A stretch of 64,000 nt of DNA from Histomonas meleagridis 2922-C6/04-290x (taxonomy: Eukaryota > Protista > Parabasalia). The notes under the pieces are model-generated. The model made no database searches and had not been told where the DNA came from. It saw only the letters and a program-made list of their open reading frames with translations. The position numbers and the translations under genes are program-made. Positions 40,856 to 45,852 of the stretch are shown here, one piece after another (the stretch's first letter is position 1; the number at the start of each line of letters is the position of its first letter). The stretch spans positions 1 through 64,000 of the forward strand of contig JAANOX010000084.1 in NCBI GenBank assembly GCA_020184695.1, in the 5' to 3' direction.

Positions 40856-41581
40856 ATATATTGACTTAAAATAAATTAAATTTTATTTCTCATAAAACTG
40901 AGACTGTGTTGCTATCATTTGGAAAGCCAAGAAATCTTATCCACATAATCGAAAATCAACTTCGACTTTGCATTTTTAACGTTCGATTTCAGAAAATATT
41001 GAACAGTTTACATGGTATGAAATGAACATGAATATCTTTAAAATAGCCACCAATTTTTCTTACATATAAGTAAAAAAGATCATTTATTTCATCAGTTCAT
41101 TATAAATTTTAAATATAAAGAAAATGGCACAAAGAAATCCTCTTTTGTGTCTTTTTTTTATACAAATGTTGACATTTTTTTGCCCGATTTGAATGCATAT
41201 AGAAAAATTCTAATGAAAATCAATTGTTTTGAATAGGGGGTAAAATTCATGTTGGCAATGCTTTTGCCTTATTTTCTAAGAAATTCACTTCAAAACTATC
41301 TAAGAGACAAATGTTTACAGACAACAAAAGTGCATATCCAGTATTTCCCTATTGAAAATAACAAAACTCCAATTATGAATAGTTTTACAAATACTCTTAA
41401 TCCATGGAATGTTGACTCACTAAAACGCACTAGCATTACAGGCGCATTTGGGTTTGAAATCAAATCCATTAATGATACTATTTTATTTTTAATTATAACT
41501 ATTTACATAATCATATATTTTTTAACTAAACGTCTTAAAAATGGCCTCACATTGATTGGAAGTAAGAGTTATCATTTTGTC

Positions 41582-43897
41582 ATGTTTCTTTTTTTGATTG
41601 AGCATTCTTTTCAATCTTTTGATGAAACATCTGGGAAACTTACTATCGAATCCGATGAGGACTTTAGTGACAGCTACATGAATCTGACTCAATATGTTGT
41701 AATTTCAGATCAAATAACCAGCATCCCAAACTTTGCTTTTGATGAATGGCCTTTACTAACTATAGTTGAAATAAAAGCATGTACCTCAATTGGAATTTAT
41801 GCTTTTGACAGCTGCTTAAACTTAACTAATGTTATATTTGGTTCTAGCTTGGAATCAATTTCTAATAATGCATTTTCATATTGTAGTAAATTAGATAATA
41901 TTTCATTTCCAGATACATTAACATCCATTGGAAATTCTGCATTCCAATATTGTACTTCATTAAAGAATATCAGTATTTCAAGCTCAGTTACTTCAATTGG
42001 AATATACGCATTTGCATATTGCTATAATTTAACATTAATTCCATTTGATAAAATCGAAAAACTTGAAGATTATTTATTTGCACATTGCTCTTCATTTGTA
42101 ACCATTATGATTCCTGACTCAGTTAAAATCATTGGAATTCGTGCATTTGATTCATGTGAAAAATTGGAATCAGTAACATTTGGCGAAGGTGTGACCACAA
42201 TTGATTATTTAGCATTTTATTATTGCGATTCATTGTATAATATTACAATTACAGCATCTGTAACTACTATTGGAGTTAATCCATTTTGTTCATGTAGAAG
42301 TCTTCAATATATTAATGTTTCCGAAGTTAATACTAATTTTTTTTCATTAAATGGTGTTCTTTATGATCATGAAATAACGAAAATTATATGTTATCCAGCA
42401 GGAATTGAAAATGGATCATTTGTATTTCCTGAAACAATTTTATCAATTGAAGATAAAGCATTTCAAGGAAATTATCATATATCTGAAATAACATTTCCTT
42501 CAACACTTAAATCAATTGGAACAGAAGCATTTTATTATTGTCATGGTATAAATTCTATAGAAATTCCAAGTTCAGTAGAATATATTGGTGATAATCCTTT
42601 TGCTGTTTGTAACAATCTTTCATATATTAATGTAATAATGGGTAATGAAAATAAATATTTTTCATATGATGGCGTTCTTTGTGATTTCATAAGTAATTCC
42701 ATAACTTCTTATCCAATTGCAAAAACAGATAAAACCTATTCCGTTCCTGAATTTATTACATCAATTGGTCCAAAAGCATTTGAAAATTCTAAATTAACAG
42801 ATGTTGATATTGCTAAAGTAGAATCAATTGGAAATGAAGCGTTTTATAACTGTGATCAATTACAATATATAATAATTCCAAGTCAAGTAGAATCAATTGG
42901 AGATGCAGCATTTAGTGAGTGTTCTGCATTGGAATCAATTTCTATTGGAGAAAATGTAAATTTTATTGGTGATTATGCATTTTATCAATGCAATAGCCTT
43001 AATTGTATTTATTTTTATGGTGAAACTTCACCAACATTTGGCGGAGAACATGTTTTTTCAGCATCACCAAATGTTCTGGTGACAAACGGATATCAAGATA
43101 ATACATTCGGTCAGTTAGGTATTTTTGCTTCATCAGTAGAAGGATGTGCCCCTCTATCAACATTAAAATTTACAGGGTCGAATACCTTTTCTCCATCACC
43201 TACATTTTCTCCATCACCTACATTTACTGCAACACCTACATTTTCTTTAACATCTACATTTAATCCGTCGAATACATTTGATCCAAAACATACATTTCCT
43301 GCGACAAGTACATTCACTTCTTCAGACACATTTACTCCTGCTCAAATATCATCACATAATATTTCTGATGGTGTCACTGTAAGTCAAAGTTATTCCCAAA
43401 CATTAATTTATGTTATGACAGTCACACAAACAATAATTTCGAATTCTTATTTAACTATTTCAGATACAATTTCTTTTAGCGTTACCACATACATACATTT
43501 TGTTTCGTTGTTTGTATTTTATGATTATAAAGTTATTACATACACTTCATTCTATAGTTATTATTCAGATTTCTTTACTGTTTTTTATTTAAATGAGAAT
43601 AATGATTCAAATAATAGTAAAATTTCAGCAGATTTATTAATTGGAATCATTTGTGGTTCAATTGCTATAGTTTTAATAATTGTTGGAATTGTCATTTGGA
43701 TTGTTAAACATGGTAATGATAAAAGTTCGTCATCGATTTTATATGAATATGAAAAAACTCAAGTGGACAAAAATAAAAAGAATGCTACGAATGAAGAACC
43801 GGAAACAATAATCGACTTTGCTGGTGTGCAAACTTCACATATCGAAGAAGATCCGTTTGGAACAGATTTCTCAGATGAAGGATTTGTAAAAATATAA
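41582..43897 (+). CDS. BspA-like TpLRR leucine-rich-repeat surface protein with signal peptide, S/T-F stalk and TM anchor
   Basis: Repeats of IPDSVxxIGxxAFxxCxxL. The likely start is MFLFLIEHSFQS at ATG 41582 after TCATTT. TM is LLIGIICGSIAIVLIIVGIVIWIV, followed by an acidic tail. Confidence 0.92.
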   Translation: MFLFLIEHSFQSFDETSGKLTIESDEDFSDSYMNLTQYVVISDQITSIPNFAFDEWPLLTIVEIKACTSIGIYAFDSCLNLTNVIFGSSLESISNNAFSYCSKLDNISFPDTLTSIGNSAFQYCTSLKNISISSSVTSIGIYAFAYCYNLTLIPFDKIEKLEDYLFAHCSSFVTIMIPDSVKIIGIRAFDSCEKLESVTFGEGVTTIDYLAFYYCDSLYNITITASVTTIGVNPFCSCRSLQYINVSEVNTNFFSLNGVLYDHEITKIICYPAGIENGSFVFPETILSIEDKAFQGNYHISEITFPSTLKSIGTEAFYYCHGINSIEIPSSVEYIGDNPFAVCNNLSYINVIMGNENKYFSYDGVLCDFISNSITSYPIAKTDKTYSVPEFITSIGPKAFENSKLTDVDIAKVESIGNEAFYNCDQLQYIIIPSQVESIGDAAFSECSALESISIGENVNFIGDYAFYQCNSLNCIYFYGETSPTFGGEHVFSASPNVLVTNGYQDNTFGQLGIFASSVEGCAPLSTLKFTGSNTFSPSPTFSPSPTFTATPTFSLTSTFNPSNTFDPKHTFPATSTFTSSDTFTPAQISSHNISDGVTVSQSYSQTLIYVMTVTQTIISNSYLTISDTISFSVTTYIHFVSLFVFYDYKVITYTSFYSYYSDFFTVFYLNENNDSNNSKISADLLIGIICGSIAIVLIIVGIVIWIVKHGNDKSSSSILYEYEKTQVDKNKKNATNEEPETIIDFAGVQTSHIEEDPFGTDFSDEGFVKI

Positions 43898-43954
43898 TTT
43901 TTATTGAATTAAAATTAATGTGTAATGCAATTAATAAAAATTAAAATTATACGG

Positions 43955-43983
43955 ACACTTTTTGAGCGAAGCTCAAAAAGTGT
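43955..43983. repeat. Perfect 13-bp-stem hairpin/dyad ACACTTTTTGAGC-GAA-GCTCAAAAAGTGT
   Basis: Perfect inverted repeat read directly. Confidence 0.92.
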
Positions 43984-43994
43984 AGGTATAATTG

Positions 43995-45073
43995 AATTCT
44001 CAGAAAACTTTTTGATAATAATTTTGTGTAACAACTTTTTCAATAGACCAGTGGTCCATGAGCTACCACATGGATTTTAATAGTTTATTTCAAGCTACTG
44101 TATCTGTTGAACAACAAAGGATTGCTGAAAACACACAAAGAACATATAATTCTTTGTTGCGTTCATATGAAAATACAATGAATCAAATCCCTAATGCACC
44201 CGAATCATATCCCATTACTGAGAATAAATTACGTGCTTTTTTGGAATTCTATAGAAGTCAACACCCTCAAACAACCTATTCCTACCTTATATCATTCGTC
44301 TCAGCTGTTGTATCTTATTTAAAAAAAATAACTTAGATGATTTTACGAAAACAAATAATTTTAAGTCGTACATGCTTGGCTTGAAAAGAATAATGAAGGG
44401 GGATACATTCCCAAATGCGAAAAAGTATGTCACAATACAACTTATGATAAGACTTGCAGAAAGTACTAATCAAAATGTAAAAAATGAAATAGAACTTATG
44501 ACAATAGAAAGTTTGTGCTTTTATGGCTTTTTACGAATTTCTGAGGCGTGCAGATTAATGTGGAAAGAAATAACATATGATCAGGACGGACGTTTGGTAT
44601 TACTCATTCCTTATTCTAAAACAGATCAAACAGGGATAAGAGTCAATGTGTAAATTTGTCGTTCAAACACAATATATTCCCCTTTTCTATGGTTACCAAA
44701 ATGGAAAGAATTAAGTTATATAAATGAAGAATCGAATGTCTTTACATTATGTGATAGAACAGTTAGGAGAAAGTTTAAATTGCAACTTAAAAAAATTGGA
44801 GTGAATCCAGAGAGTTATTCAACACATTCTTTTCGTAAAGGGGCCGCTCATGAAGCATCATTGGCTGGAATTGCTGATTGCAAAATTAAAGCCCAAGGAA
44901 GATGGATTTCTTCATGCTATCAGCGTTATACTTCTATCCAAATGGTTGAGGCTGGAGATGCAATTACAGTAAAAATTTAATTAAAACTCAATTTGAATTT
45001 GTCCATATAATTTTTTATATGAGATTGAAAAAGTTGTTACACAAAATTGTTATCAAAAAGTTTTCTGAGAATT
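43995..45073 (+). mobile_element. Tyrosine-recombinase DNA element bounded by 50-bp terminal inverted repeats (Crypton-like content)
   Basis: Left TIR 43995-44044 and right TIR 45024-45073 are reverse complements with one mismatch. They enclose a single YR gene. Confidence 0.85.
44058..44980 (+). pseudogene. Tyrosine recombinase/phage-integrase family gene (about 307 aa if repaired), with one frameshift and one in-frame stop
   Basis: Catalytic set is intact: GFLRISEA (R), SKTDQ (K), HSFR (H-x-x-R), QGRW (W), CYQRY (Y). Frameshift at A8 44321-44328. TAA at 44651-44653 is in frame with the downstream part. Confidence 0.88.
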
Positions 45074-45384
45074 TTTTAATATGACAAAATTTAACGTTTT
45101 CTTATATGGAATTAAATGTATTTTTCTAAGTGAAAACTCTAAAGAAAATAATTCTAATTAAGTTGAACATATTCAATGAAATGTTTAAATTTGCTAACAG
45201 ATGATTTATACCTTAACCATAAAATAAAAATTTTGAAATTCTAAAATTTGCAATGATGATTTTTTAAGTTAAAACAAACAAAGTAAATTTGCGCATGGTT
45301 ATGTTTACACTCTGTTTGTACATATTTGTAACAAAATTGTAAAAGATGAAAATATTATTGAAAGTTAAAAATGTGTAATCATCT

Positions 45385-45852
45385 TTATTTATGCTTGCAG
45401 TAAAGAGCCATGTACTCTTGAGCCTTTTGCTTGAATGCAGCAATATTGGTAGAGTATTGTTCCGCAGCTTCTTTATTTAATGGAGAATTAGGATTTGGTT
45501 CAGAAAACAAAAATTGTAGGCCTAAAACAAGTTGATCAATTGACATAGCCGCAGTGTAATTATCACGCAAAATGTTAAGACAAACAGCTCCCGTTTCTTC
45601 AATATTTGGATGCCAAATTCTTGTCTGGCAAATAATAGATGGTCGCTGAAATGGAAAATCATCAGGAATTGTAAAATGAAAATCAAACACTCCGCCTTGC
45701 CAGATACCTTCAACAGGTGTGATTTCGATGATAAAATCTTGAATATTATTTGGGTCTGGAATTATTAACTTTGCTCCGTAGAGTGAGTCAAGGTTTTCTA
45801 GATCCTTTTGTAGCCTGATTTGACAGGCTGTCATTTTCTTCCTCCTTGACAT
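45385..45852 (-). CDS. UBC12: NEDD8-conjugating enzyme Ubc12-like E2
   Basis: QIRLQKDL; WHPNIEETGAVCLNILRD; GLQFLFSEPNPNSPLNKEAA. Confidence 0.85.
   Translation of the reverse strand: MSRRKKMTACQIRLQKDLENLDSLYGAKLIIPDPNNIQDFIIEITPVEGIWQGGVFDFHFTIPDDFPFQRPSIICQTRIWHPNIEETGAVCLNILRDNYTAAMSIDQLVLGLQFLFSEPNPNSPLNKEAAEQYSTNIAAFKQKAQEYMALYCKHK

Follow-up and report, generated by a model that had tools for sequence, protein, structure and literature searches.

A probable DNA transposon family with a tyrosine recombinase gene and terminal inverted repeats in the parabasalid Histomonas meleagridis

Genomic Setting and Structure of the Element

Histomonas meleagridis is a parasite of poultry. The window, i.e., the whole stretch of DNA analysed here, comprises positions 1 to 64,000 of contig JAANOX010000084.1 (64,000 nt). 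It contains a compact element in the 3'-3' intergenic space between two convergent host genes, namely the gene of a BspA-type LRR surface protein (41249-43897, plus strand), which lies outside the element, and the gene of a ubiquitin-conjugating enzyme (UBC; 45385-45852, minus strand). In the BspA-type gene, eight units of an 18-nt tandem repeat (43164-43336) encode TFSPSP-like repeats. In addition, a poly(A)-type loose end was found in RNA-like runs at 45365, near the ubiquitin-conjugating enzyme gene.

The element had been noticed in a preliminary description of the sequence as a single tyrosine recombinase (YR) gene between 50-bp terminal inverted repeats (TIRs) with one mismatch, bounded by positions 43995 and 45073. 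The repeats were confirmed: the 5' TIR (43995-44044, plus strand) and the 3' TIR (45024-45073, minus strand) form an inverted repeat of 50 nt in which 49 of the 50 positions are complementary (98%). The left boundary was found to have been set too far in. Immediately outside the 5' TIR there is a left-end module (43941-43994, plus strand) that consists of a conserved TTAA followed by a 49-nt palindrome (43945-43993) with arms at 43945-43967 and 43971-43993. The palindrome has a perfect 12-bp stem CACTTTTTGAGC and a GAA loop, and its DNA fold was estimated at -18.8 kcal/mol (z = -9.7). Together with the four bases that precede it, it was kept in seven of eight copies of the same family, which is designated family A, while the outer flanks of these copies were unrelated. 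Short-read unitigs derived from different family-A copies also part leftwards at 43938-43941. The conservation of the palindrome amid unrelated flanks and the divergence of the unitigs place the unit at about 43941-45073 (1,133 bp). The GC content of the element is 31%, compared with 28% in the window.

Both arms of the palindrome can be recognised as diverged versions of the outermost 21 nt of the TIR (AATTnTnnGnAnACTTTTTGA). Counting the arms together with the two TIRs, the element thus has four units of this kind, of which three lie at the left end and one lies at the right end. The motif ACTTTTTSA was found six times in the element ends (~150 nt), with two copies in the palindrome (43957, plus; 43973, minus), two direct copies in the 5' TIR (44007 and 44034, both plus) and two in the 3' TIR (45026 and 45053, both minus); in the whole 64-kb window it occurs 16 times, with 5.9 occurrences expected. 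The right end, ...GAGAATT (element terminus ...CTGAGAATT at 45073), and the left end, TTAAAATTATAC..., are common to about ten copies in unrelated flanks.

A short palindrome, GACCAGTGGTC, was also observed at 44044-44075, right after the 5' TIR and ~7 nt before the start codon; a family with 50% identity (C238) has GACCATGGTC at the position equivalent to that of GACCAGTGGTC. The left junction of the element was covered by contigs in both of the runs X1 and X2 (X2 being the second sample, from a 2021 study). The right junction (45072-45135) was covered by a contig in X1 (45022-45218) and by none in X2, which may be a filter gap or a strain difference.

The Tyrosine Recombinase Pseudogene

The sole gene between the TIRs is a YR pseudogene (44058-44980, plus strand; ATG at 44058, TAA at 44978-44980) of ~307 codons if read through, which is broken into three open pieces. 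It encodes an N-terminal SAM-like core-binding domain and a Cre-like catalytic domain. The catalytic residues span 44534-44929 on the plus strand, namely Arg 44534, Lys 44618, His 44825, Arg 44834, Trp 44903 and Tyr 44927 (first bases of the codons). When a profile of the YR family was compared with the PDB, Cre was the best match among the solved structures (E = 8e-12, residues 15-298, both domains), and R, K, H, R and W of the YR coincided with R173, K201, H289, R292 and W315 of Cre. The complete R-K-HxxR-W-Y set proposed from the sequence was borne out by this profile alignment and by the alignment of the family.

Among the Pfam families, only PF02899 and PF00589 matched the YR, both weakly. 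The YR proteins gave no match to the DUF3504 or GCR1_C domains at E <= 0.01, and the best score against the NCBIfam Xer and integron models was 39 bits at a cut-off of 220. No other ORF of at least 40 aa with RT, RNase H or DDE domains was found in the 1,133-bp element, so that the ORF and Pfam searches agreed with the initial description of a YR gene without RT or DDE transposase.

Two lesions had been proposed in the gene. The first is a deletion of one nucleotide (G) at 44321-44328 (plus strand) that leaves a run of eight A and shifts the reading frame, the other copies having AAGAAAAAA at this site. The second is an in-frame TAA (44651-44653, plus strand) where the other copies have TAT (Tyr). 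Because the assembly is Nanopore-based, the lesions were checked against short-read unitigs. The first lesion is shared by the copy on contig C4 and is thus inherited rather than a sequencing error; both the G-containing and the G-less variants of the site were found among the unitigs. Support for the second comes from a single-copy-depth unitig that matches 44589-44682 with 0 differences. Comparison with the other copies and with the unitigs verified both lesions.

Copies of the Element in the Genome

Further copies were searched for in the attenuated-strain H. meleagridis assembly (281 contigs, 43,133,364 bp; Nanopore-based; PMC8529796). The search, which had been suggested at the outset, revealed a multicopy element with shared termini and not a single-copy one. 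Family A consists of about ten copies in this assembly, which are 90-98% identical and all defective: six are full-length (93-100% identical to the window copy), two are truncated and two form a rearranged pair. Stops or frameshifts were found in every copy, and most of them are private to one copy. The least damaged gene, with a single stop, belongs to the copy on C149, which is one of the six full-length copies and is interrupted by an insertion. The identity of 90-98% and the mostly private lesions imply that a master copy was intact until recently. The recent activity that had been proposed for the element is supported by these close copies and private lesions, and what speaks against it is that the assembly holds no intact family-A gene.

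Target-site duplications (TSDs) were absent from eight family-A and seven family-B insertions (family B is described below), which extends to these eight family-A copies the earlier statement on the window copy. In the copy on C149, a 1.4-kb element (C149 ~70686-72096; L004:2527-3937) has inserted at nt 55-70 of the YR element. This insert has ~55-nt TIRs, a frameshifted rve-type DDE integrase and a clean 16-bp TSD, CAGTGGTCCATGAGCT. An integrase and a TSD of this kind have been described as the hallmark of IS481EU of H. meleagridis (PMC10045372). The insert fits an element of the IS481EU type and serves as an internal TSD control for the TSD-less YR element.

The rearranged pair (C70:287853-288712, L008; C275:64684-65543, L009) shares a complex internal rearrangement. 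The order of the segments is nt 1-562, then 739>681 and 826>740 in inverted orientation, then 917-1079, with overlaps of 3-5 nt at the joints. The 826/681 joint was found at low depth in DNA contigs and in RNA-like runs.

Sister Families and Relatives in Other Organisms

A translated search of the genome revealed 53 further YR matches at 27-50% amino-acid identity. Twelve sister loci were inspected, and in nine of them a gene of ~300 codons lies within inverted repeats of 38-68 nt, with unit lengths of 0.7-1.2 kb. The termini of the sister families share AATTCT(C/T).., and most families have a palindrome directly outside the 5' repeat, the sequence of which varies between families while its position is constant. 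TIRs of 30-68 nt were present in every relative inspected.

Family B has two intact genes of 301 aa (C245:37300-38202 and C275:179932-180834), the first of which belongs to an element at C245:37099-38499. It comprises at least seven long copies and at least nine internally deleted, non-autonomous copies with the same breakpoints (C83:465980, C259:50836, C135:14136, C135:24894, C82:131018, C81:72487, C273:331639, C99:271533 and C87:323778). The non-autonomous copies are ~560 bp long and 94-99% identical, with a deletion at query position 545/1148, and they retain the palindrome and both TIRs. The start of all family-B copies lies ~80 nt ahead of the 5' TIR, which places the 73-nt palindrome inside the mobile unit in this family too.

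Outside H. meleagridis, intact relatives of 294-304 aa were found on short contigs from gut metagenomes and from Logan, and two proteins of Tritrichomonas foetus, namely TRFO_11718 and TRFO_04238, are also related. T. foetus was the only species named among the 30 closest protein clusters, none of which came from Trichomonas vaginalis. More distant matches include a cnidarian "Integrase/Recombinase" of ~334 aa. Where flanks were available for the T. foetus and metagenome relatives, their TIRs contained CACTTTTT(G/C)A, i.e., the ACTTTTTSA motif recurs, and on scaffold L078 a perfect palindrome with 25-nt arms lies just upstream of the TIR. In five Logan contigs, the sequence breaks off within the TIRs. 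Logan contigs of 1,053-1,075 bp were considered as circles and rejected, their exact 30-nt terminal inverted repeats being a k-1 assembly-graph artefact inside the TIRs.

Insertion Sites and Proposed Transposition Mechanism

Four non-autonomous family-B copies are located in the AT-rich spacer of a tandem ankyrin array, and several copies occupy the same point of the spacer in such arrays. Empty ankyrin monomers read ..AATAATTTGATATT(T/C)CAAAATAATATTTGG.. and occupied ones ..AATAATTTGATATTT|CACAAATAAT...GATGAGAATT|CAAAATAATATTTGG..; at the junction bases, ..GATATTT|CACAAAT...GAGAATT|CAAAATAAT.. corresponds to the empty ..GATATT(T/C)CAAAATAAT.. The comparison of empty and occupied spacers indicates exact insertion, with nothing duplicated and nothing lost. 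This outcome is expected of a conservative recombinase and not of a DDE transposase. The search for empty sites recommended in the preliminary description has thus yielded paralogous ones for family B.

The YR element is multicopy and free of TSDs, it has fixed ends that are identical in unrelated flanks, and it is accompanied by intact sister genes, by non-autonomous derivatives and by empty paralogous sites that show exact insertion; these are the properties by which a transposable element is recognised. The interval 43941-45073 of the window is very probably a decayed DNA transposon of 1.13 kb with a YR as its only gene, which would have moved by conservative recombination.

The following course of transposition can be proposed. 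The recombinase would bind the terminal repeats through the conserved GAGAATT terminus and the repeated ACTTTTTSA motifs, join both ends and excise a circle. The circle junction would consist of the abutted TIRs, which form a palindromic lox-like site, and the circle would go on to recombine with AT-rich sites in the genome that are similar to this junction. Under this scheme, each TIR would be a half-site, and the complete site at each end of an inserted element would be composed of half element and half flank. The complete sites at the two ends would then have direct orientation and give excision rather than inversion; with TIRs as half-sites, inverted ends need not mean inversion. Our best guess for the palindrome is that it provides extra recombinase-binding sites that would make the two ends unequal.

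Several features of the ends are relevant to this scheme. AATT was found at both termini of families A and B and of the relative L057, which is a weak signal for an AT-only 4-mer in a genome of 28% GC. The deduced joined ends, GAATT·CACAAAT, resemble the target TATTT·CAAAAT. In a permutation analysis of the similarity between each flank and the opposite terminus, family A gave P ~0.001 in one of three alignments, and family B gave 0.03 with a control value of 0.02. With this weak result, target mimicry is treated only as suggestive, and the resemblance of the right flank to the left terminus, which is not clearly above the control, was not accepted as proof of att-type homology. For the locus in the window, neither a circle junction nor an empty allele nor an excision joint was found among the assembled contigs, which hide rare forms.

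Alternative Explanations

The element could possibly be an ordinary Crypton (Goodwin et al. 2003; Kojima & Jurka 2011, PMC3212892) and thus belong to a class of YR-only DNA transposons that is already known, with TIRs that would simply be half-sites of unusual length, although we consider this the less likely interpretation. The two share a YR gene without RT or DDE, the absence of TSDs and a presumed circular intermediate; the terminal AATT might recall the terminal direct repeats of Cryptons, and the cnidarian protein is among the distant matches. However, according to reviews, Cryptons have no TIRs and only direct repeats of 4-6 bp. Here, the TIRs are 47-68 nt long, a conserved subterminal palindrome is present at the 5' end, the size is ~1.1 kb without introns, the named hosts, H. 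meleagridis and T. foetus, are parabasalids, and the Pfam search gave only the weak PF00589 and PF02899 matches in place of DUF3504 or GCR1_C. In our reading, gene content makes this an element of the Crypton type, Crypton-like in principle, and the superfamily seems to represent a variant architecture among YR-only DNA transposons that is not described in the literature searched; the published descriptions and the domain searches set it apart from Cryptons.

It is very unlikely that the TIRs serve a DDE transposase encoded elsewhere, with the YR as cargo or resolvase, as in Tec1/Tec2 or MarCry-1_FO. TIRs are a hallmark of DDE cut-and-paste elements, and the genome does contain DDE elements such as IS481EU. 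Nevertheless, none of ~15 independent insertions has a TSD, one empty site shows exact insertion, and no DDE gene was found in any element. Moreover, the TIRs diverge along with the YR families yet keep the terminal GAGAATT and ACTTTTTSA. The Tec elements of Euplotes (Tec1, Tec2 and Tec3) are likewise protist elements with TIRs and a YR gene, but Tec1 and Tec2 also encode a DDE transposase, are several kb in size with long TIRs, and occur only in ciliates; assignment of the window element to this group was rejected, since it has no DDE gene and its host, H. meleagridis, is not a ciliate.

The preliminary description had also considered a self-inverting cassette. This would be comparable to FLP on the 2-micron plasmid or to Fim-type switches. 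A YR acting on inverted full sites inverts the intervening DNA, and the TIRs are 49/50 identical, but such a cassette is extremely unlikely here, and this part of the description is not supported. About ten copies are dispersed in unrelated flanks, all of them pseudogenes, and non-autonomous derivatives have spread. Since the palindrome is found on one side only, beyond the TIRs, it serves as a marker of orientation: the gene runs away from it in every family-A copy, in all ten family-B copies examined, in three other families and in L078, and this constancy means that there is no flipped copy. No strand-switch joint was found in the DNA or RNA-like contigs, although contigs may miss rare flips; the one aberrant joint they contain, a back-step of 141 nt, can be traced to the rearranged pair on C70 and C275.

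Derivation from an integrated virus or plasmid, for instance from the integrase module of a Polinton-like virus, in which YR integrases do occur, can practically be dismissed, given that the sharp ends of the copies are only 1.13 kb apart, host genes (BspA LRR, UBC) flank the element and no viral genes adjoin any inspected copy. Bacterial origin or contamination was rejected on account of the eukaryotic neighbours, the GC content (31% versus 28%) and Xer scores far under the cut-offs.

Possible Role and Origin of the Palindrome

The palindrome travels with the element, and the spacing of its pair of ACTTTTTSA motifs differs between families: 7 nt in family A and the C238 family, 23 nt in family B and 17 nt in L078. 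As the spacing varies, the palindrome is unlikely to be the crossover site, and a conserved lox-like core was rejected as a general rule. In L057, the 41 nt of available flank before the TIR contain no palindrome, and the left end of this relative resembles the outer arm of the window palindrome. A comparison with L057 suggests that the palindrome may have arisen by an inverted duplication of the left terminus.

The 29-nt palindrome core was searched for in the genome, and only family-A copies and ~19 loci of another context were found. The latter are located upstream of ankyrin-like gene families and at one end of 2.5-kb non-coding repeats (C50:100236, C50:105000, C26:38827, C99:380724, C233:63977, C245:155650 and ~13 more; L031-L043). 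At these loci, the core ACACTTTTTGAGC-RAA-GCTCAAAAAGTG is part of a shared module of ~85-110 nt, and its 3-nt loop occurs in both orientations relative to the flanks (GAA/AAA/AGA or TTC/TTT/TCT). No solo family-A palindrome was present among the loci with the core, and the palindrome was rejected as a target site or solo footprint. In family B, the copy C227:124366-125556 (L075) has a flipped 7-nt centre in its 29-7-29 palindrome, CCAGAGT versus ACTTTGG in nine others.

It is conceivable, though improbable, that the palindrome is processed during transposition as folded (hairpin or cruciform) DNA, which would make this a superfamily with a structure-specific substrate. The constant position of the palindrome with a changing sequence, the flipped centre on C227 and the loops in both orientations are hints in this direction. 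Arm-to-arm exchange is generic to hairpins, and flipped centres and loops are for this reason regarded as a lead that does not amount to evidence of function. If the folded-palindrome reading were true, a eukaryotic YR transposon would parallel the integron attC and CTX-phage attP sites of bacteria.

Comparison with Known Tyrosine Recombinase Systems

The recombinase resembles Cre of phage P1 in its R-K-H-R-W-Y set, in which Trp replaces the third His, and the deduced circle junction is like loxP in that two inverted binding arms would surround a short centre. However, the similarity to Cre is at the profile level only, there are several binding-type motifs per end, and the system is a dispersed eukaryotic transposon and does not serve plasmid resolution.

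With the DIRS elements, the family shares a eukaryotic YR, inverted terminal repeats and extra copies of the terminal sequence placed internally, which recall the internal complementary region of DIRS1. In contrast to DIRS, there is no ORF for RT, RNase H or methyltransferase, nor room for one in 1.13 kb; DIRS, Ngaro and VIPER were excluded by gene content, no RT and RNase H being present.

Bacterial RIT elements are YR systems with TIRs and three recombinases. The substrates of integron attC recombination and of the CTX phage are folded palindromic DNA, and in attC the structure is conserved rather than the sequence. The parabasalid element is similar to RIT in its TIRs and to attC in its palindrome, which differs in sequence between families and keeps its position, but it encodes one recombinase and not three, and its scores against the NCBIfam Xer and integron models are far under the cut-offs.

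In the searchable literature, no description of YR elements with TIRs in parabasalids was found, and the layout of TIRs plus palindrome was not found described there for any eukaryotic transposon. The proposal of an undescribed parabasalid YR transposon family was supported as regards its YR-only gene content, its multicopy nature and its shared termini, and a wider superfamily came to light; its novelty stands for the literature searched.

Significance

The window copy itself is dead and of interest only as a member of its family. To our knowledge, YR-only DNA transposons of eukaryotes have so far been represented by Cryptons, the ends of which are poorly defined and the mechanism of which has never been shown. 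Within 1.1 kb, the parabasalid superfamily combines sharp ends and repeated candidate motifs for binding with intact genes, non-autonomous partners and empty sites, and these features together make it a compact system for reconstituting and testing eukaryotic YR transposition. It also adds an unannotated class of repeats to the genomes of Histomonas and Tritrichomonas, in which the copies are now labelled as hypothetical proteins.
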